DNA of 64,000 nt from Lama glama (lineage: Eukaryota). Below, piece after piece: positions 1-58,192 of this stretch. Location of the stretch: NCBI GenBank assembly GCA_028534125.1, contig CM052825.1, positions 25,916,001 through 25,980,000 on the forward strand. Reading direction: 5' to 3'. Positions within the stretch are counted from its first letter, which is position 1. The number at the start of each line of letters is the position of its first letter. The notes beneath the pieces were generated by a model that saw nothing but the letters and a program-made list of their open reading frames with translations, had not been told where the DNA came from and searched no databases. The position numbers and the translations under genes are program-made.

Positions 1-2815
1 ATCCAGTCCTGCACAAGGCTGTTCCCCTTCTCAGCCTTCAGGCCCACCAGGTTTGGGCCCAGAAGTTTCTGCACCTCAGCAATGGTCAGCGGCTGCCAGG
101 GCCCCCAGACGGCAGTCAGGGTCCACTTGCCTTTCCCAGAAGGTTGCTTTCCTCTACTGTGTCCAAACCACCCACCCCATGCCTCCCCATCCAGACCCTG
201 CCTTGGCCCCTCCAGACTTTGGAGAGGGCCTTGGCTACCCCTCAAAGGCCCCACCCCTGGATGCCCCCCTTCTCTGTGGTTGTACCAGCACAGCCTCTGT
301 CTGCAGCTTCTTGAACGTGGCCAGGTCCATGTTTATGTTCTGCTGACTGAGAGCCCGCAGGTCCTCCATGGGGGCCCCACCTGCCCATGGGAGAAGGCCC
401 TCTAAGTGTGAGAGCTTGCAACAGCCCCTAGTCTCACCCTCTGACCACAGGCTACCAGAAGCCACTTCCTTTCCTGAGAGTTTTCCCAAAAATTCCTTTG
501 CCTGGTGACCACCTGACCCTCTGGGTTGGAAGAAAGGCTGGAGGTGCCCAAAACTCACAGGATCTCAGCCTATACACACTTGGAGGGACACAGGGTACAC
601 TTTGGTCACACGGCCAACAGGCTGCCCAGTGAGGGGGGAACCTGGCAGCATGGATGCGGGAGCTTCAGGCATCACCCTCCCCTCCCCAGCCATGTCCTCC
701 CTGGCTCACCCAGGTAGGGCTTGATATTCTCAAAGTATTCAGACCCTGTCATGTTCTTGAAGACAATGCGGGCCTTGGGATAGAGGACGGCTATCTGCTG
801 TGGGCTGCATGCATCCAGGTCCTGCGGCCTGGTCACCCTGGGGAGGTAGCACAGGGCCAGGCAGTGAGCTGGGAGCATGGCACGCCCACCACACCTGAAA
901 GAGCCCTGGACTCACCAGACAACATTGAGGCTCATGGAGCCCAGCTGCTCAGGGCTGAGAAGGCACAGGTAGGTAGGGTGGAGAGTGGCCAGGGTCTCCA
1001 GGGTGGCCTTGTCCAGCTGGCCCCCTCTCACTACATAGCGGGCAATCAGGGCAGCCACCTGTGGGAAGAGGCCACTAGGTGGCTTGGGGCAGCGAGAGAT
1101 GTATCCCCTTGGACCTGCACAACCTCACATGCTGTGTCTGCCCCTCCCCACCCTGGTAGATGGTCACCTGAGCATCCATCTTGTGTCCTTTGCTGACTTC
1201 GAGCAGAGATTTCACAGTCTCCAGGGATGTCACATTCCACTTGTAGATGTCCTCAGGGGTGACCGAAAGGAAGAAGTACCTCAGGTGCTGGATCAGGGAC
1301 TCTGGGTATCCCTGTGGGTAGAACTTCCCCAGAAAGTGACCATGAGGGCCACAGCCACTCCCCGGGCAGCTGGGAAAGCCGAGCTATGGCAGGCAGGTGG
1401 GAGCCCGAGTCCTGAACTACCTTGTCCAATTTGCGCTTAAAAATGTGGAGATGCTGGTAGGTGAAAGGTATCAAGTTCACCCGGTCCATCTGAGCAGCCA
1501 GCAGGGCCCCGTCCACACAGGCCTCCAGCTCCCACTCCTCGTAGAAGACGAGTTTTTCATCCACCACTTGGGCTTTCCGCCCCGGGGGGCAGGCCTTCTC
1601 TGCAGGGGTAGGCAGGGGGTTGGGGACTGGGCTTCTCCCATCAACCTCTTCCTCCCACACCCACACTGAGACCCTGGGCAACACATGACCTCTCCGGGTC
1701 TCAGTTTATGCATCAGCAAAATGGGGTGTTTCTGTTCACTCTCTTGGGTCATCATGATTGACAAGAAGGGCCACAGGCGCAGGCAGGTGAGACATCACAT
1801 GCCAGCCCCCACCCTACATCTTCTGACGCCCAATGGGGCTGGGCACTGTGCTCACTCTCTGTGCCCCGCCAGGCCCTTGGGATGATGACAGTCAGCTCAG
1901 GCTGTGGCCAGGACTGGTCCCGGGAGGTGTGCTGCAGCCATGGGGTCGTGAGGCCCTGAGAACAAAGCAGCGCTGGGACTGAGCAGAGAAGCCTGGCGCT
2001 CAAGGACCCCCACCCAGGGCCAGAAAACCCTCTTTGATTCCCCAGAGGGGCCTTACCAATCCCGTGTCTGCAGCCTGGGCCCTGGAAGGTAACATCCACC
2101 CTGCAGGGGACGGCACACCAGGCTCAAGGGGATGGCCAGGGACTTCTAGCAATGCCTGCTGCAGTCCCCCACCCTGGCGAGGAAGGAGACAAAGCTGGCC
2201 CCTCCCAGCCCCGTGCACACCCCATGGGTGTAGAAGCAGAGGGTTAGGCCCCTGCACCCCACGATATCACGTCCTGCAACACCACACCAGGGAGCACAGG
2301 CCTCCTCCTGGGGCCTCGCTGCTCAGGGCAGTCAGACACCTGTCTCATGGGCACCTTCAGTTTGGCCTGTGCCCCCATCACCACCCTGCCTCAACCTCCA
2401 ACCCCGTAGGTCACCGCAGTCCAGCATGGGTGCCGGACATAGTCACCTCTCAGGGCAGAGATATGGCTGACAGCCTACCTGGGACTTGAGGCACCTGATG
2501 AGATTCAGGACACTTGTCTGGGCTCAGGGCACCTAATTAGATTCAGAGCATCTGCCCAGGATTCGAGGCACCTGCCTAGGGCAGGGTTGGGGGGCACTGT
2601 CCACAGCCAGGGAAGGAGGCATAGAGCAGGTAGCGCCTTTCCTAAGGCCCCGAGCCCTAGGGACCCACAGCTACCCTTGGACGCTCTCTGGCACTCCAGT
2701 ATTTTGCCACAGCTCATCATCATTACTCACCGAGGCCTAGAAGCAGGAGCAGGAGGCTGCCATGAGTTGAGGTCCCATAGGACTCCAGTGGGGTTCGAGC
2801 AGTCTGCAAGGCCAT
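1..2815 (-). CDS. MSLN: Mesothelin precursor (partial, 3' end off-window; MPF-coding exons absent)
   Basis: Coding exons in transcript order: 2815-2731 (MALQTARTPLESYGTSTHGSLLLLLLGLG), 2100-2057 (WMLPSRAQAADTGL), 1955-1856 (GLTTPW...PRAWRGTE), 1599-1421 (KACPPG...FYEEWELEACVDGALL...), 1323-1168 (FYPQGYPESLIQHL...WNVTSLET), 1058-916, 837-710, 380-286, 92-1 (PLTIAEVQKLLGP). All GT-AG and phase-consistent; peptides match mesothelin; syntenic with CIAO3. Confidence 0.95.
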
Positions 2816-5232
2816 GGTCTGTGAAGGACAGCCACTCTGATGTCCCCACTACTTCCCATCCCCACCGCTTCCCTGCACCCACGATACTGCCCCAGGCCAG
2901 TGTGGGGCCTTGTGGGGCTGCAGGGGTCTCAGGGCCCTGGAGGGCTACCAGCTCAAACCTTCACAGGCCTCCCCAGCAGTGGCAGTGTCTGTGTGTGTGG
3001 CCTCTGGCCCTCCTCTCAGGACCAATCAGCCTGCCTGGCCCGCCTCCTCCGGGAAACCTGCCCTTCTGCCAGGGGGGTCAGGTCTGAGTCAGCCTGGCCC
3101 TCAGCTGTGGGAGCCCAGGCGGGCGCCCATCCTCTCTCCCCATGGGGCAGGGCGGGAGAGTTTCGTGTGCAAGGAAGCAAGGCCTGGCTGGCCTTGGTGT
3201 CCCCACCCCAAGCAGAGGGACAGAGCAGTTTGGGGGCTGGGGGTCACGCTGACCCCTCAACCTGCAGCATGGCTGTCCTCCCCACCCACCCACAGCCACA
3301 GGTGCCTGGCTTTGTGTAATCCCAGGGCCCTCCTAGGTAGACGAGGCTGCCACAGCCCACCTGCCATCCTGGTTTCCCTTCTGAGGTTCTTCCGGAAACA
3401 GAGGCCTGGACCAGTGTGAGTGGAAGGTGGCTGGGGTGCTGCTCCCTAAAGAGGGGGGCTTGCAGGAAACCAAACCACCTTCCACTCTTGCCCTCCCAGA
3501 GAGACCCAGAGAGGGAGGCCGCCTACAGCCAAGTGCAGTGGAGCCATACCCTCCCCCAAACCTTCACCAAGGCCTGTGTCGGGCCCCACCCCAGCTCAGA
3601 AATGGGGGAGGGGCATGTTTATGTCTCAGCAACCGCTTTCAGCCAGGCAAAGAGCCCAGCCTGGGGGAGTGCCCTGAAGAATGGGCCGCTGACTGGGGCC
3701 CCTACCTGTGGGGTGGGTGAGGCCAGGCAAAGGCTGTGCAGCCCCTGCTGTCTTCTCTCAGCCACTACCCCCATCCCATGTAACCAGGGACCCCCCTAGT
3801 GCCCTAGCTGGGGTCTCCCACTATAGGCCCTGGAATCTGCAACCTACCCCCAGGTAGGCCAGATTGGGCCACAGACACACCTCAGCTGTCTTGGAGCTGC
3901 AGCTTCCAGAGTAACCCAGGTGTGACCTGCAGAAGCCACATCTGTTTCGGCCAGTCTAGGGCAGGCATATTTGTGTGACAAGGGAACAGTCCCCTATGGC
4001 ACTCTGTCTCCTTATGCAAGTCTGCTCTGATGCTTCCCTTTCTGGGCCTGGGATGGTCCCATCTCCAACCCTGAGCCCTCCAAGACCAGTATTCCCCTGG
4101 CCCCCTGTCACTCATTAACCACCTCATACTCGCTGAGTGCCTATTGTGTGCTGGGCCCTACACGGATGCTGATACACACGGGGGTAGGTGATTCAAGCCC
4201 TATCCAGGACCTGGGGGTGGGGCCTGCCACAGAGAGGGCTGGCCCTGCTCCTGCCCTCCTATCCCTGCCCTGCTAGCCTGTGGGATCTGGCATCTGAGTG
4301 GACCACCAGCTCAACAGAGTGGTGTGAGATAGAGGTAGCTGTGACTGTGACAGAGGAATGGTCAGCTCCAACCCCCGAGCCCAGGGGTCATCAGCTCATA
4401 GCCTCCAGCAGGTGTGCAGCTGCAGGACACTGGCTGAAGCTCTCTCCCGCCCCACTTGTCCCACCCACCTCCAGAACCTCCCACCCCAGCTTAACCACAG
4501 TCCCCAAAGTCTGGCCTTCAAATGATGGAAAATGAATTCAGACCACATTCCCTGCCAGCTTCAGGTTCCTCTGGTGAGGGTGGGCAGGGGCATGGATCAC
4601 AGATTTAGGGTCTTGGACACAGGGTCATTTTATCTGCCTTAAGCACAGAGATGTTGTGTGGCCAGCCTGGGGTCACACAGCATGTCAGGAGTAGCTAGGG
4701 CTAGAGTAGAGTTGACCCTGAGGGCACTGCCCTCTGAGAACAGGGGAGGTGATCCTCACTGCTCCCCAAGTGCAGTGGGAACAAGGGAGGGGGCATACAG
4801 AGGGGGCAGGGGTGGGGTTTCCCCACCACCCCAGCCTGCTTGTGTGGGGCTGGACAGGGTCCCCTGCAGGGTGGGTCCCAGTACCAGCCTCCACTTAATC
4901 CCTGCTCCTACCCAGAGCTGCTTGACTAAAGGTGCTGACAGAGGTGTCCCCCACTCCCCTTCCCAAGCCTGCCCTCCCATGTGACCCCACTCCACACGGA
5001 TGAGGCCATGGTCATGAGCCTGGACCCTGGGCTAAGAGCTCCCAATCACCTCCACAGGATCTGGGGGACCCTGCTTGTGGGGACTCTGATGTTCCAGGGT
5101 GATCAGCCAACTCTGAGCCTCCTCTGATTCAGTTTCGTCAACTGGGAAGCAAGAGGCTGGCAGCCTCTGAGGTCTGTCAAGGCAAACAAATGAGGCACTG
5201 GCCGGCAGCTGGGAGTGCCAGTACTCAGGCCA

Positions 5233-5256: not shown

Positions 5257-8095
5257 CCTGGGGAGGGATGTGGGGTGGAGAGCTGCCTCTGCCTCTCCCA
5301 CTGTGGGCGGGTGTGGGAGCCCCGGGCAGATTGACCCACGTACCAGGTGTGTGTAGAGCCACGCCCTTGCCGCTTAGGGTCTTACTCTCCCATTTCTCAG
5401 GTGGGGAAACTGAGGCTCGGTGCTGCAGGGAGGTCACAATCACACAGCAAGGCAAGGTGTGTTCTCCCTGCTGGTGCCATGAGAGTCTCCGTCGGCCACC
5501 CCCCAAGCCCAAGGTCAGCAGGTTCGGGGTGGTGGCTACTCAGCCAGAATGTGACTCCCGGGAGCGAGTTCCAGGATCAGGGCTGTTTCGCCTGCACATC
5601 ACCATAGGGGTGGTCAGGTGTGGGGCTGAAGGAGCCCACCTACCGAGGTACCGGCTGTCTCCCAGGTGGGAGGTGGAAGCCACCTTCCTGCTGCTGTGGC
5701 TACAAGGTTAGACAATGTGTGTCTTTGTGCTAGCCGGATGCCAGCATCCGCATGCCGATCTGACTTTGCTCCATGGCTTTGGTGTGCACCCCGGCAGATG
5801 GAGTCGCTGTGACTCCCTCACTGCCCACCCCAACCCTGTGTGCTCCAATATTTTGGTGAACAGGAATCCCCTGTGTGAAGTCTGTCTCTGCATTTCACAT
5901 CTGCAAAGGCTTCTGTTGGCTGACCCAAGTATGTACAGCTGCCCCATCTCTGACCTTTTTCCATGAGCTGGGTTTTCTATTATGTGCAGTGGAGCCAAAT
6001 GCTAATTGATACAAAATTCAGGAAGGCTGCCAGGTATAAGAACCAACTTACACATAGAGTAAGTGCCCTGGAAGAAAAGTTCCGTTTGCAGAGAACAACT
6101 GAAAACTTCTGGACAAGATGTAAAAAACCAATTCCCTAAGGGCTCTGGGGTATGAAGGAAACAAGACAGATTTCAGGTGGGAATTGATACCAGCGTGGGG
6201 TGTGTCTCCCTTTGTGTGAGGGGCTTTATTGGGTGGAGCACTTAGACTCCAGCAGAAATCACACCACGTTTCTGGCTGAAGAGAGGAAGGAGCCCAGAAT
6301 CCCCAGACAGTAGAGAGTGAATGGAGAACTCTGAAAAAGAGAGAGCCAGAGGAGGGAACCCCAAATTCTGTGCATGGATGCCACCTAGACCTCCTGCTGA
6401 CCCCTGAGCCATGTGTGTGCAGGGCAGACGGGAAACAGCTCAGATTACAAACTGGCCAAGACTGACCTCTGCCCTCCTCGGGGTGGCAGAGGTTACAGCT
6501 CAAGTCTGACTGAGCTCACTGTCCACCAAAACAGAGGCATCAACAGTCTTTGTAGGAATATAACAGAATGCAGTGTCCACACAACAAAATAGTCACAACA
6601 TTTGTGACTTGGCATAGGGAGAGCTGGGAGATTGTGACCCATTCTCCAGGGAAGAGAATCCATGCCAAGTTAAGATAGTTATTAGCATTATTAGACAACG
6701 AGGGAATGGAAAATTAGCTCTTGTGAATGCCGAGGTAGGAAAAAATGACAGTATTTTCTAAAGAACCAAACAGGAAATATTAAAAATGAAAAATCTGAAA
6801 TTTAAAAATTCCCTGGATGGACTTAACCGGATCCATCACTTCCGATTGAGGGTTAGGTGGGAGCTACCCAATTGCACAGGTAAATGGATTGTGAGATGTG
6901 GCAGTTTCCTCTGTGTCTGCAAGGAGGAACTGCAGTCTGAGCTCAAAAGATACAGCGACTGTGGTGTGCCTGGGAAAGGAGAGGTCATGTCTGGTTTTAA
7001 CTCTGATGGCATAAGAAGTATATGAAACACATTATTTTTGTTGTTGTTAAGATGACGGTAAAGCATTATATGTTTTGCCAGTAAGTTCTGTTCTCCCTTG
7101 TAATGTTAGGTTGACTTTGTTAAGAGACATTATCAAGTTAGAAGCAAAAGGTGAATTCCAAAGGCATCTGGCGTTCAATGACTCAGATTAAAGGAAGCTC
7201 TTCTCTGTGTATATCCTAACATTGAATTCTACACTTCAAATGGGTAAGTTACATAGTGTGGAAATTCTATCTCAGGGAAGCTGTTTTTGAAAGACAAGCC
7301 AAAGACTTGAACAGACACTTTACAAAAGAAGTTAACGGTAAATGGTCAATCAGCTCATGAGAAGATGCCCAACTCCACCACTCCCTGGGGAGATGCAAAT
7401 CAAATCCACAAGGAGACACATACCCACCAGAATGACAACATTTAAAGGCACTGACAAGGCCAAGTGTGTCACGGATGTGGGACGGTTGGGAGTCTCAAAC
7501 CCTGCTGGCGGGAGCACAAGGTAATATGGGCACTTCTGTTTGGCATTTTCTTACGAAGCTAAACATACAATTAACCATACAACTTAGCCATTCTCCTCCT
7601 AAGTAACTGGTCCAGAGAAACAAATAAGTGCACAGAAAGACTTGTACATGAATATTCCTAGCAACTCTACTTACAATACCAAAATGGGGAAAAACAACTT
7701 CCCATCAATAGATAAATAAACAAAACATGGTATATTCACATGATGCCGTCCTAGTCAGCAGTAAGAAAGAACAAACTACTGATGTGAGGAGGATGAATTT
7801 CAAAATCATCATGCTGACTGAAAGAGGCTGACATCAAAGAGGACGTGATGTATGATTCTGTTTCTATAAAAATGTTAAACAGCAAACTAATCTATTATGA
7901 CAAAAAGCACATCAGTGGTGGCCAGGGGCCAGGCAGCTTCATCAAAATTAAGGATTCCTGTTCATAGGAGTAAGCAGGGAGGAAACTTTTGGGGGTGATG
8001 GAAATGTTCTGTGTCTTCACTGGGGGGAGATTTCATGGGGTGTGTAACCACCCAAGCTCTTTGGACTGTGCACTTTTTTAAAAATGTTATTTGTA

Positions 8096-8205
8096 GGGGG
8101 CAGTAACTAGGTTTATTTATTTATTTTAAATAGAGGCACTGGGGATTGAACCCAGGACCTTGAGCTTACTAAGCACATGCTCTACTGCTGAGCTATACCC
8201 TCCCC
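8096..8205 (-). mobile_element. tRNA-derived SINE (camelid vic-1-like)
   Basis: Reverse complement GGGGAGGGTATAGCTCAG...GGTTCAATCCCCAG with A and B boxes, followed by an (AAAT)n tail; inserted in L1. Confidence 0.8.
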
Positions 8206-8497
8206 CCTGGACTGTACACTTTAAATGGATGCCTTCATTGTGCATAAATTATACCAGAAAACATTGATTTGAAAATCAATAGCATAACAAGTGTTGGCAA
8301 GGATGTGGAGAAATTGTTACATTGTGCATTGCTTGTAGGAATGTAAAATGGTGCAGGGGCTGTAGAAAACAGTCTGGTAGTTCATCAAAAACTTAAGCAC
8401 AGAATAACCACATGACCCAGCAATTTAAGATACACCCCAAAGATTTGGAAACAGGGACTGAAACAGATAACCTGTGCACCCACGTTCATAGCAGTGT

Positions 8498-8630
8498 NNN
8501 NNNNNNNNNNNNNNNNNNNNNNNNNNNNNNNNNNNNNNNNNNNNNNNNNNNNNNNNNNNNNNNNNNNNNNNNNNNNNNNNNNNNNNNNNNNNNNNNNNNN
8601 NNNNNNNNNNNNNNNNNNNNNNNNNNNNNN
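8498..8630. other. Assembly gap (N run)
   Basis: 133 N. Confidence 1.
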
Positions 8631-8694
8631 CACCGTGGATGAACCTTGAAAACATCATGCTCAGTGGAAGAAATCAGATACACAAGAGTGGTCA

Positions 8695-8810
8695 GGGGAG
8701 GGTACAGTGCAGTGGTAGAGTGTGTGCTCAGCATGCACAAGGTCCTTGGTTCAATCCCCAGTACCTCATTAAATAAATAAATAAAACCTAATATCTGGCC
8801 CCCCCAAAAA
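8695..8810 (+). mobile_element. tRNA-derived SINE (camelid vic-1-like)
   Basis: GGGGAGGGTACAGTGCAGTGGTAGAG...GGTTCAATCCCCAGTACCTC followed by (AAAT)n. Confidence 0.8.
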
Positions 8811-10737
8811 ATTATGGTGTGATTCCATTTATATGAAATGTCCACATTAGGGAAACCCATAGAGACAGAAAGTATAACAGAGGTTACCAGGGAGGCAAGG
8901 GAAGTGGGAGTTATTGTTTATTGGGTGCAGTTTCTGTTTCAGAAGATGAAAAAAGTTCTGGAAATTGGTGGTGGTGATGGTTACATAACATTGCAAATGT
9001 ACTTAACCATCACTGAATTGTACACCTAAAAATTATTACAATGTAATTATTTATGTGTATTTTACCACAATAAAACATCAATAGCATTCCTGTCTGTCAG
9101 CAATCAGAACAAATTTAATAGGAAAATGTATAATTTCTAATAACAATGAAATCCACAAAGTAGATTCATAGAAATCAGCCTATCTGATAACAAAGAATTT
9201 TTTATGGAACAACCCAGCATGATAAAGTGTCAGTTCCCCTGACATTATCCTATAGTCAATTCAACCCTAACAGTCAATTCAACCCTAGGAGAATTGTTTT
9301 TCAAGAACTCAACAGATTCATTGAACATACAGGGAATAAATATCCATGAACTAAACAGAAGAGGCAAGCTGCCAGACATTAAGACACCGCCACAGTGATT
9401 AAGATAGAAACAAAGGCACAGTCTACAGATTTCAAGGAAAATACACCCTGCGCACATGGAGCTTCACTCATGGAAAAGGTGGCTCTGCAGAGCAGTGTCG
9501 GGGGAGGGACAGATCCACAGGACCGATGGTGTTGGAAAATGGGACGCCCTGAGTGAAGAAAAGTAAAGCAAGAGCCCTTGTTTACATCAGACAAGTTGGA
9601 TACCGGGTGCATTAAAGACCTGTATACCACCGAGGGGACTAGATGGACAGAGAAAGGAGGGCCTGAGGAACGCAGGGAGATGTGGAGACCTTCCACAACA
9701 GAACCTGCCCTGAACTGGTGGGTGAACGTGACGTCACTGGAGTTAAGGATTCCTATGCAATAAACAAATCGGCAGCTAACAGGCAGCTGTCAGAAGGAGA
9801 GAAGAGATGTCTAACAGCTGACAATGCCGTGTGTGGTTCAGAAACTGGGAGGACACGTGAAGAACCGCACATCAACAAGAAAAGCCAGAAACCGATAGGA
9901 AGGGGGCCCAGGAGGCAAGCAGGAATTCTCAGGAGATTGAGGAGCTAGAGGCTTGTGAAGCCAGCTTCAACTTTTGCAGGAACCCTAGAAATTCGAACTC
10001 AAAACAGGAGATTTACAAAATTCAAAAGGTGGATCACAGCAGGTGTTGGTGACCATATGCTGAGACAAACCCAGCAATAGATTTTTTTCCTAATATGCAA
10101 AAGTATGTGATGCTCTTTAAAGAAATGTAAGAAAATGTGGAAAGATGACAGTTGCCCTGGTTCCCACCTCCTGCCCAGTCCCTGCAGCCCACTGGGGGAG
10201 CCCCTCTAGACTTTCCTCATGGTGCAGTCCTGGTGCACAGCCCACCTCCTGCTCGCCTACCCATCACGCACTCCCCCTGCCTGTCCTGTCAGGAGTTGCC
10301 CTCCAGCTACCCTTGGCTTGTTCACCATTTTTGAGTGAACAAAACAATTTAGGGGCTGTTTATTCTGCAATTAAAAAAAAGAAAAGCTTTTTGCGTTTTT
10401 TTCCACCTGGCTGAGCCTGCTCCCATCAGGGCACCTCCAGCCACACCTAAGAAGTGGGATAAATAATCTCTTCTGGCTTGGCTGTTTCCATTGCCAGTGT
10501 AGACCCATGTAGCTCTGATCCAGTAATCCCCATGAAGCCAAGGGCAGCCAGCTAGGTCTCCTGGCAGGACCCACATTCCCAGGGGACAGGAGCCGTGCCC
10601 AAAGCTCAGTAGGTTGGCTCCTGCTCCGATTTCTCAAAATAAAAAAACCTGTCCCCCAGTCTGGGCAAAATAGAAAAGGGGACCAGAGTCCGCTGGCTTG
10701 GAGCCTGGGGCAGACATACAGTGGGCCTCTGCTCCAG

Positions 10738-12099
10738 GTCACCACTTCCTAACCCTAACTCAGCTGGTTCTGCTGGCTGTGTGCTTGAGTGTGCTGGCCG
10801 AGGATGGGGCTGGGGGTGCAGAAGGCCGTGGGGCTGCCATTTGCCCAACTGCCTCCTGTTCCTCATGCCTGGCTGCCCAGCACTGCCCAGTCACCCCCTG
10901 CTGGACCTCTCCTGCTGCCTGGGGCCCAGCATCCCAGAGCCGTGCAGCCAGGACGTGGCACTCTGTCACCAGGCTCCCCTGTGGCCTTTTGTGCTGGTAA
11001 TGGACAGCATTGTCCTGGCCCAGATCCTGGTGGACACCTCCCACAACATTTTCCAGCAGATGTAGGAGCAGGCAGGCATGGGCAGCCCTGACACTGGGTC
11101 TGAGGAGGCCTGGGTGGTGACCCCACCCACACGTGCCCTGACCCTAGAAGGAAGGGCTCCCTCACTGTCTTCCAGCTGCTCCCAGAACCAGCACCCACAA
11201 CATCTGCAGAAATGTCCTGACCTGCAGGTGTCTGGGGGTGAGGGTGGGTGGGCAGAGCCACCTTAATCCTCTGGCCCCCCACCCCACCACAGTCCCAGGC
11301 CCTGGGGCAGTCACTGGGGACAGCCCTGGCTAGAGTCAGAGGTCAGGCTTGGACCCTGAAGGCCCCATCCCAGGTCCTAGGCTTGAGGGCTGCCTCCTTT
11401 GCAGATATCTGAGCTCAGCATGGGCTGAGAAGGGGCCCCTGAGCACCCCTTCCCCTCGACACATCTGAGTGGCCCTAGGGTGCAAACTCCCAGCTGTGGC
11501 TAGATACGCACCTGGGAAACAGCATCGTGTCCAACTAAGCACCTGCTGGGCTCGAACCCAAGGCTCAGCGGTGGGGAGCACGGGAAGCGGGCGCACGAGG
11601 GTGGGGTGCCTCGGGCAGACAAGTGGGAGGACAGACACCAGGGACGGCCGGGCTGACAGGCAGTGCACACCCCAGGCCCAGGTCCTGGGTAGACTTGTGC
11701 TGGCGCAGCTGGCCACCTTCCCTATGACCTCAGGTGCCATCACCTGGAAGCTGGATGTGGACCAGGCCCTGGACCAGCTCTTCCTGGAGCTCACCAGGTG
11801 AGCCTCGAGGCATGGCAGGCATCCTGGGCAGCTGGGGTGGTGCTCTCAGCCCCTCCCATCCTGCCCTCGGGCTATTCCTGTGCCCTGCCTGGCATTGCCA
11901 ACCCCACATGGCAGGTCCTTCTTCAGCCCCTTGCCGACTGCAAGGCCCCCACCATGTTCCAGGACAGCTTCAGATGGTGAGTGGCCGGGCTGTGGCGGGG
12001 CCACCCCTCAAGACCATTGAGGTGACTTTGCTTCCCCACTGTCCTCAGGCTCCCGGAATGTCCCCAGTTCTGAGAGAATACAGGCTATACACACACACA

Positions 12100-12135
<36 letters not shown>

Positions 12136-14272
12136 ACTGCCCACTGCCTTGGCTGCCTGTGGGGAGGGTGACCTAATAGAGAAGGGCCCAGATTGGGGTG
12201 TGGAGGAGCCCGGGTGCTTCGGGAGGGCAGGGTTGGAGGGCAGGGCTGACCCTGGAGGGGTCCTAGGTCACCTCCTCCACACCCCCCACAGAAGGGAAAC
12301 CAAGGCAGATGTGGAGACATGGGACAGAACCTCAGATAATTCGGGGCTGCAGCTCTCCTGGGCCAGAACAGTGGGAGGACAGCACCCCGGGCACACGTGA
12401 GGGGGGCCCTGTCGGGGTCTGCTCTGCAGAGTGGCTCCCTGTCCCCCACATACCCCAAGGCCGCCTGCTCCCTCCTTGAGAGTGGAGGTGCCCCCAGCAC
12501 AAGAAAGACCTCCTCTTCCAGCAGGTACAGGGGACTCCCAGCTGTGGCGGCCCTGCTGGGTGAGCAGAGATTGTCAGGGGAGAAGGACAGGGAGCCTGGG
12601 GTGGGGTCTCCTGAGGGGAGCCCATGATCTCACAAGCTGGGTGCTCCCCAGGTTTGGCTGCTGGGTCCCAAAAGCACACTTTCCAGGGTGACTCTCCCAC
12701 AGTCAGTGGTCAGACCTGACCTTCACAAACCAGTAAAAACATCACAGAGAAAACTAGCTGAGCTTCCAATGGCCAAGTGGGCTCCAGTCACGGTGCAGGT
12801 CAGCCCCTGAGCTGTCCCCTGGGGTGGGGGCTGCCTGAGCTCCCCTCACTGGGGAGGTCCAAGGAGTGCTCCAGAAGGTGGCGGGGCCGAGGGCTGAGCA
12901 GGGAAGGGCCTGTCCCAAGCAGTAGGGGCTGGGTGACGGGTGACTGGAAGGACAGCGTCAGGGGTCACACACAGGGTTGGTGGGGGATCTACAGATGGGG
13001 GGAGTAACAAGGGGGTCAGACGTAGCAGCGGAGGAGTAGTGATGTTGCCTGTTCCCCCGTAGTGGGGGTGTTGGTCGCCAGCGTGCCAGAGATGGACATG
13101 TTTGTGAAAACTGACCCCAGGGAGGTCCGAGTGGGCAGTCAGGCATCTCTAGGTCTGTCATCTTCTCAGGCCAGGCTGGTGGAGAAGCTCTGGATGCCCC
13201 CCTCAACCCCTGCCTAGGGTACACCAGCCCCAGACCTGCTGTGAGTGCAGGGTTGGGGCCTGCGACTACTTAGGGGCCCACAGGTCCCACAACACGCAGA
13301 GGGGCTGCCTCTCCAGAAGCCAGGTTACCAAGACCTGCAGGGTGAGCCTGCAGATCTGAAGGGTGTGGAGCACCATAGGGCAGGCAGGCCTGGGGGAGGT
13401 CCTGGGACTGGGGGTCCTGCAGAGTTCCCCTACTCTACCTGGCAGCCCCACGCCCCTGCCACAGATACTCCAGATGGCTCCTTGATGACTTGGGAGCTGA
13501 GTACAAAGTTGGGGTGCAGAGGCAACTCGGGGCTGCCAGCAAGCCCGACCTTGATGTTCTAATGGGGCCATGGCTAACAACACCGTAAACCACTTGCAAA
13601 CCACTTGCAAACCTGCCATCAGGACAGGCCAGTGGTTTAACAAATGGCTTGGAGTTGCCCCATCCAAGCTAGTTTTGTGCCCGGTGCTTGCCCCCCGAGA
13701 GCACAGACCAGTGGCCTGGCCGTCCTCCCTGGGACCCGTGGCAGAGGATGGAGCTGCTGGGCCCAGAGCCTGGTCAGGCAATAGAGGGGCTTCTCCTCTC
13801 AGCTTGCCCGCTGGTGCTGCTTGGCCCACTGTCCCCACAGAGATGAAGCCTCTGGGTCACCTGCTTGGTCCTCTTGGGGCCAGGGTAGGGCCAACCTTCC
13901 ATGCCTGTGGACAGATGTGTGTGCACCTGTCCTCCCGAGGTCGGAGCGTCACCACTGCAGGGCCAGGGCCTCTCTGTGACCATCTCTTTCTGCTGCCTCT
14001 TGCAGCCCCACCAGGCAGGAGCAGAGGGGGGACACTGGAGGGCTGCCAGGCTCTCCCTGGGCCCTCTTCTCTCCCAGCCTGGCCCTGCCTGCCGAGCAGG
14101 TCAAGCAGGCCTCTCATTAGTGGCTAATTGCCATGTGCATCAGGCCTCCCAGGGCTGTTGCTGGGATCACACCTGTTGACAAGATGTGGCGGCCCCAGAG
14201 GGAAGGCACCGGTGTTGATTATGCTGCTAATGATGTGCTCATTGTCCACAGTAATTCCCTTCAACAAATAAA
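10738..14272 (+). pseudogene. Candidate unannotated multi-exon (unitary) pseudogene, possibly PH-domain containing
   Basis: Exon-like segments 10738-11071, 11682-11797, 11915-11976, 12481-12559, 12652-12687, 13284-13341, 13841-13884, 14006-14179, mostly with canonical AG/GT; AATAAA at 14267-14272. Lesions: TAG at 11063, frameshifts, one GC donor and one GAG acceptor. Family not identified. Confidence 0.35.
12089..12133. repeat. (CA)n microsatellite
   Basis: ~22 CA units with one interruption. Confidence 0.95.
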
Positions 14273-57701: not shown

Positions 57702-57834
57702 NNNNNNNNNNNNNNNNNNNNNNNNNNNNNNNNNNNNNNNNNNNNNNNNNNNNNNNNNNNNNNNNNNNNNNNNNNNNNNNNNNNNNNNNNNNNNNNNNNN
57801 NNNNNNNNNNNNNNNNNNNNNNNNNNNNNNNNNN
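57702..57834. other. Assembly gap (N run)
   Basis: 133 N, within the probable FBXL16 3'UTR. Confidence 1.
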
Positions 57835-58012: not shown

Positions 58013-58192
58013 NNNNNNNNNNNNNNNNNNNNNNNNNNNNNNNNNNNNNNNNNNNNNNNNNNNNNNNNNNNNNNNNNNNNNNNNNNNNNNNNNNNNNNNN
58101 NNNNNNNNNNNNNNNNNNNNNNNNNNNNNNNNNNNNNNNNNNNNNNNNNNNNNNNNNNNNNNNNNNNNNNNNNNNNNNNNNNNNNNNNNNNN
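58013..58192. other. Assembly gap (N run)
   Basis: 180 N; may hide the FBXL16 polyA signal. Confidence 1.

Follow-up and report, generated by a model that had tools for sequence, protein, structure and literature searches.

In human and mouse, mesothelin (MSLN) is made as a precursor of ~622 to 626 residues that contains the megakaryocyte potentiating factor (MPF) in addition to mesothelin. A region of ~222 residues is released from such long forms as the 31-kDa MPF, and in human MSLN six coding exons are found between exon 2 and the last exon of the pro-region. A shorter form of the gene has also been known for some time. As summarized in PMC11417096, Kim DS and Hahn Y (Int J Mol Med 2011;27:289-93; PMID 21132261) reported an MSLN exon deletion in cow, pig, horse, panda, hedgehog, and dog, and the same summary has them put the exon loss down to nonhomologous end joining of introns. 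The subject of PMC11417096 itself (Front Vet Sci 2024) is canine mesothelin without MPF, which is expressed in mesothelium and lung and keeps a signal peptide, a predicted furin site, the cysteine pair, equivalents of Y318, W321, and E324, and a GPI signal. Our literature search on the Laurasiatherian MSLN exon deletion returned only this dog paper, and for mesothelin or MPF in camels it returned nanobody and immunotoxin papers only.

The locus described here lies at one end of a 64,000-nucleotide stretch of Lama glama DNA, referred to as the window. The minus strand of positions 1 to 2973 holds the 5' two-thirds of an MSLN gene, and the C-terminal exons and the GPI signal lie beyond the window, past exon 9 (Table 1). 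Exons were compared singly, and the RefSeq proteins P0039, P0040, and P0002 were used for full-length comparisons. Queried alone, exon 4 retrieved P0002, a 405-residue protein with the same exon junction, whose cluster comprises RefSeq "mesothelin" models of 401 to 409 residues from Camelus bactrianus, C. ferus, C. dromedarius, and Vicugna pacos. Window exons e1 to e8 are found unchanged in P0039 and P0041, both of them alpaca models. P0039 and a further alpaca model, P0040, belong to the Mesothelin family (Pfam PF06060), scoring 624.8 and 605.6 bits, respectively, against a cut-off of 25.8, and a hydrophobic tail (..LLLAFILS) forms the C terminus of the alpaca models in RefSeq.

Table 1. Features of the MSLN gene in the window, listed in the direction of transcription
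Feature	Positions	Strand	Content and evidence
Exon 1	2731..2973	-	5'UTR to at least 2973; translation, RNA contig 14 of X16 over 2730-2973, GT donor
Intron 1, 630 nt	2101..2730	-	Joint 2099 to 2730 ("skips 630") in X16, X17, and X15; GT..AG
Exon 2, 44 nt	2057..2100	-	(G)WMLPSRAQAADTGL; phase 0 end; signal-peptide end and first pro-region residues
Fused intron, 101 nt	1956..2056	-	GTAAGG...polypyrimidine...TTCTCAG; joint 1954 to 2056 ("skips 101") in X16; without MPF-like coding sequence
Exon 3', 100 nt	1856..1955	-	GLTTPWLQHTSRDQSWPQPELTVIIPRAWRGTE; phase 0 start; furin-type site position RAWR
Exon 4, start of mature mesothelin (Region I)	1421..1599	-	KKACPPGRKAQVVDEKLVFYEEWELEAC...; Y318, W321, and E324 equivalents; PDB match
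Exon 5	1168..1323	-	FYPQGYPESL...MDAQ
Exon 6	916..1058	-	VAALIARYVV...; RNA and splice signals
Exon 7	710..837	-	VTRPQDLDAC...; RNA and splice signals
Exon 8	286..380	-	GAPMEDLRAL...; RNA and splice signals
Exon 9	1..92	-	PLTIAEVQKLLGPN...; runs past window start

All nine MSLN exons in the window have an open frame and AG/GT splice signals. The ATG of exon 1 (2815-2813) opens a coding part of 28 codons plus 1 nt (2815-2731), the translation of which (MALQTARTPLESYGTSTHGSLLLLLLGL) supplies most of the signal peptide. By tblastn and alignments, exon 3' corresponds to the exon that closes the pro-region in long-form MSLN, and the fused intron sits where long-form species have their MPF-coding exons and introns; if retained, it would introduce a stop after 18 codons. 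Exon 4 encodes Region I (KACPPGRKAQVVDEKLVFYEEWELEAC), the N terminus of the mature protein, which is 70 to 75% identical to that of human and mouse MSLN. Region I matches mesothelin in PDB entry 4f3f_C at an E value of 1.4e-23 (other human mesothelin structures, ~1e-23), with the Y, W, and E residues and both cysteines aligned. The FYEEWELE motif, which holds the equivalents of the MUC16-binding Y, W, and E residues, is kept in the window gene, and MUC16 binding is predicted.

Much of this layout had been proposed in the first-pass annotation of the window. Re-translation confirmed its exon coordinates and translations (2100-2057 and 1955-1856, 101 bp apart and meeting in phase 0), and its statement that the downstream exons are open and keep FYEEWELE agrees with our splice and frame check and with the 4f3f_C alignment.

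Some variation is seen at the acceptors of two exons. Exon 5 has tandem alternative 3' splice sites, starting either at 1323, which adds FYPQ, or 12 nt downstream at 1311, which drops it, and exon 6 has an upstream acceptor (~1058-1085, minus strand) that adds PPSGLLPQ. Together, these alternatives account for the three isoform lengths in RefSeq (401, 405, and 409 residues); the Camelus RNA contig described below uses acceptors 1323 and 1058, the 401-residue form. Upstream of the gene, positions 6001-10000 have a GC fraction of 0.40 to 0.43 versus ~0.6 elsewhere. The AT skew of this stretch is positive, one of the N runs lies within it (8498-8630), and it is probably an interspersed repeat insertion.

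Direct splicing of exon 2 to the exon at 1955-1856 is observed, in Camelus RNA only. Contig 14 of RNA run X16 (915 nt) joins 2973-2730, exon 2, 1954-1856, 1599-1424, 1325-1165, and 1055-915. Its joints include 2730 to 2099, 2056 to 1954, and 1856 to 1599, and all of the joints have GT..AG borders when read on the minus strand. In X17, an RNA run from the same study, a 17-nt loose end at 2056 corresponds, with two mismatches, to the start of the exon at 1955; it reads GLTTSW and has no match to the adjoining intron. The 2057-to-1955 splice junction anticipated in the first-pass annotation is therefore present in both runs. All six of the listed nonsynonymous differences between the X16 contig and the window are Camelus mesothelin residues, which indicates that the RNA comes from camel and not from alpaca. 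Another run, X15, which was guessed to be RNA, gave a 211-nt contig over 1923-2101 that is unspliced at the 101-nt intron and has an adaptor-like end; this contig may stem from genomic DNA or from a transcript that retains the intron.

The window gene is orthologous to the human and mouse gene and shares with it the first two coding exons and everything from the last pro-region exon onward, but it does not have the ~222 extra residues of the long form (PF06060 profile ~44-267), as only 101 nt separate the flanking exons. When three long-form MSLN proteins (Microcebus, 642 residues; Castor, 622 residues; Galeopterus, 753 residues) were searched by tblastn against the whole 64-kb window, no match to MPF residues ~44-265 was found at E<0.5, and the matches to the long form start at residue ~265 (window 1958-1854). 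The Pfam comparison gives the same picture: the best stretch of the alpaca models covers PF06060 profile positions 268 to 622 from protein residue 44, next to a second short stretch, and the Microcebus protein covers positions 5 to 622. The empty tblastn search, the PF06060 start at 268, and the phase 0/0 boundaries thus bear out the proposal that exons equivalent to human residues ~44-265 were lost in frame. The accompanying description of the product stands as to a signal peptide, a stub of ~40 residues, and intact mesothelin; the length of ~400 residues given there to the mature part does not, since 401 to 409 residues is the size of the whole protein.

Relocated MPF exons, or a remnant of the long N-terminal half that opossum and bird mesothelins have, were also considered upstream of the gene and rejected, as long-form, opossum, and bird mesothelins gave no tblastn match at E<0.05 above position 2815. 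The same proteins had no significant tblastn match in 10738-14272, and this stretch is therefore not a detectable MSLN-family remnant.

The short form is widespread. A full-length search with P0002 retrieved mesothelin models of ~400 residues at 97 to 100% coverage from many species, including Artiodactyla and Cetacea (hippo, blue whale, dolphin, narwhal, yak, goat, musk deer, pig, and peccary), Carnivora (seals, dogs, cats, panda, mustelids, hyena, and meerkat), donkey and rhino, more than 15 bats, and pangolin; models of 618 to 654 residues came from primates, rodents, and their allies only. In the alignments, all short forms, those of camels, cattle, and horses among them, share a junction of the type ..GW(V/M)LPSRAQAADTGL followed directly by G(V/L)(M/T)TPWLQ.., as in AQAADTGL joined to GVMTPWLQ. 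This junction between exon 2 and an exon 9-type exon is found in protein models from six orders, namely, Artiodactyla, Cetacea, Carnivora, Perissodactyla, Chiroptera, and Pholidota, in a set that does not include Eulipotyphla. Conversely, when the query was cut down to the MPF part of the Microcebus protein, 85 matches were obtained, from Euarchontoglires, opossum, and birds (the bird and opossum "mesothelin" being ~1,100 residues long), and 0 of the 85 were Laurasiatherian.

Long forms also vary among themselves. The "mesothelin" models of opossum, Tasmanian devil, and birds (P0199, P0209, P0210, and P0216) are 808 to 1,116 residues long and have PF21058 as an additional domain at the N terminus; the eutherian gene thus seems to have undergone one shortening before the Laurasiatherian deletion. 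Among squirrels, the Sciurus carolinensis models P0155 and P0014 have a nonhomologous Pro/Gly/Ser-rich stretch in the place of MPF, and Marmota and Ictidomys keep most of it.

The window gene thus shows no substantive difference from the described Laurasiatherian form (PMID 21132261, as far as its account in PMC11417096 goes), in which the MPF exons are likewise gone in frame and mature mesothelin is kept. Its exon 2 is joined in phase 0/0 to the last pro-region exon, as the RNA joint also indicates, and its junction is that of the cow, pig, horse, and panda protein models. The dog models have additional N-terminal residues ahead of the signal peptide (438 residues in total), unlike those of alpaca. 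The deletion itself is already known, from the 2011 publication, from the 2024 work on dog, and from the RefSeq alpaca and camel models, so that the novelty implied by the first-pass annotation falls away; camelids are not among the species named in the available text of PMC11417096, and the window gene adds one lineage to these.

With strong confidence, we interpret the locus as an MSLN gene with an ancient in-frame multi-exon deletion that is typical of Laurasiatherian mammals and yields a precursor of ~401 to 409 residues. An ancestral deletion would have fused the two introns that follow exon 2 and precede the last pro-region exon, respectively, removing the exons for ~222 MPF residues; as both flanking boundaries are in phase 0, the reading frame was kept. 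The gene encodes a pre-pro-mesothelin of ~401 to 409 residues, consisting of a signal peptide, a stub of ~35 to 40 residues, a putative furin-type site, and intact mature mesothelin. Signal-peptide cleavage probably occurs near SRAQA/AD, leaving a pro-peptide of ~35 residues, and furin may then cut at RAWR in alpaca or RARR in Camelus. Mature mesothelin would be GPI-anchored through a signal outside the window and would bind MUC16 via Region I.

The putative furin-type site (R-X-K/R-R) differs between species. The PRAWRGTE sequence of the window contains RAWR, a minimal R-X-X-R motif, whereas Camelus has RARR and the seal and panda models have RDRR at this position. The weakening of the motif to its minimal form in the window is due to a TGG codon (1866-1868, minus strand). 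In the pig, Rousettus, and pangolin models the basic motif is gone altogether, as might be expected if selection to maintain cleavage was relaxed after the loss of an MPF to release.

From the identical protein junction, together with the cited paper, we infer a single origin of the Laurasiatherian deletion. Short models with a like junction are, however, also found in Afrotheria and Tupaia, and the shared junction alone is thus no proof of a single event. All six Afrotherian MSLN models retrieved are short (elephant, 402 residues; tenrec, 371; elephant shrew, 384; aardvark, 439; golden mole, 349; manatee, 512), as is the Tupaia model (392 residues; models P0212, P0214, P0024, P0211, P0213, P0021, and P0125), and none of the six Afrotherian models is among the MPF-region matches. 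In elephant, tenrec, elephant shrew, and Tupaia, exon 2 is joined to the last pro-region exon as in Laurasiatherians, and in aardvark the alignment with the long form already begins at residue 240, indicating that this model keeps residues like those of the preceding exon. These models may reflect independent MPF losses, or else gaps and model artefacts. It is conceivable, although we hold it to be rather unlikely, that MPF loss extends beyond Laurasiatheria; if these models are real, placental mammals have lost MPF more than once, or incomplete sorting took place, with the same frame-neutral exon block affected each time.

The truncated gene might instead be a decaying pseudogene, and several observations could be read in that way: MSLN knockout mice are reported as normal (PMC11417096), the stub diverges faster than the mature part (mean pairwise identity of 62 to 67% versus 75 to 78% among 15 Laurasiatherians), the furin motif is gone in the three models named above, and the killer-whale models seem truncated. 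Yet the open exons and canonical splice sites of the window, the identity retained by the mature part, the spliced mRNA in Camelus tissue, and the Y, W, E, and cysteine residues of Region I all speak for a working gene. In addition, among 15 listed differences between the window and Camelus, nine are synonymous and six nonsynonymous, a rough sign of purifying selection from an incomplete list, as 15 further differences (four runs, 5-kb stretch) fall outside it. We therefore give a decaying pseudogene very little credence; judged by its sequence features and by its expression in Camelus, the window MSLN looks functional, with the Y/W/E residues and a minimal furin motif kept, in line with the view taken in the first-pass annotation. 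As for the killer whale, the Orcinus orca models P0003 and P0043 (290 and 360 residues) have an unrelated, frameshift-like C terminus after exon 5, and those of other cetaceans are 403 to 486 residues long; orca MSLN may be decaying, or the models may be poor.

That the loss is specific to camelids, or an independent event in artiodactyls, had been suggested when it was first seen in camelid DNA. We consider this highly improbable: hippo, whales, cattle, goat, pig, carnivores, equids, rhino, bats, and pangolin all have the junction together with a homologous stub, the 85-match search contains no Laurasiatherian protein with the MPF region, and a Laurasiatherian deletion has been published (PMC11417096). 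The comparison across mammals, proposed as a means of dating the loss, accordingly places it in the Laurasiatherian orders at large and not in camelids alone.

The short layout is also seen at the DNA level. By script, the N runs of the window are 8498-8630, 57702-57834, and 58013-58192 only; the first of these is the nearest to the gene, in agreement with the first-pass annotation, which had seen no N gap between the exons. Sampled words of 1400-3000 are present at a fraction of at least 0.97 in 14 DNA runs (five coded organisms, seven studies), and a 9,543-nt de novo contig of run X11 spans 1-5000 gap-free with four differences, although X11 is near-identical to the window and may be the source of its DNA. 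GC-rich regions are often missing from assemblies, and the window here is 59 to 62% GC. Even so, an assembly collapse, with MPF exons present in the genome and missing from the assembly, is excluded by the distance of all N runs from the site, the 14 DNA runs, the X11 contig, the splicing of the 101-nt intron in Camelus RNA, and a junction common to the annotations of four camelids and to dozens of other Laurasiatherian genomes.

Camelids are the source of anti-mesothelin nanobodies; they have no MPF of their own, but they do have a mesothelin whose Region I is ~70% identical to the human one. Serum assays based on MPF are not transferable to these species. If MPF was indeed lost repeatedly in placental mammals, this would argue that it is dispensable, and a whole superorder without MPF already argues against an essential role of this factor in megakaryocyte formation.
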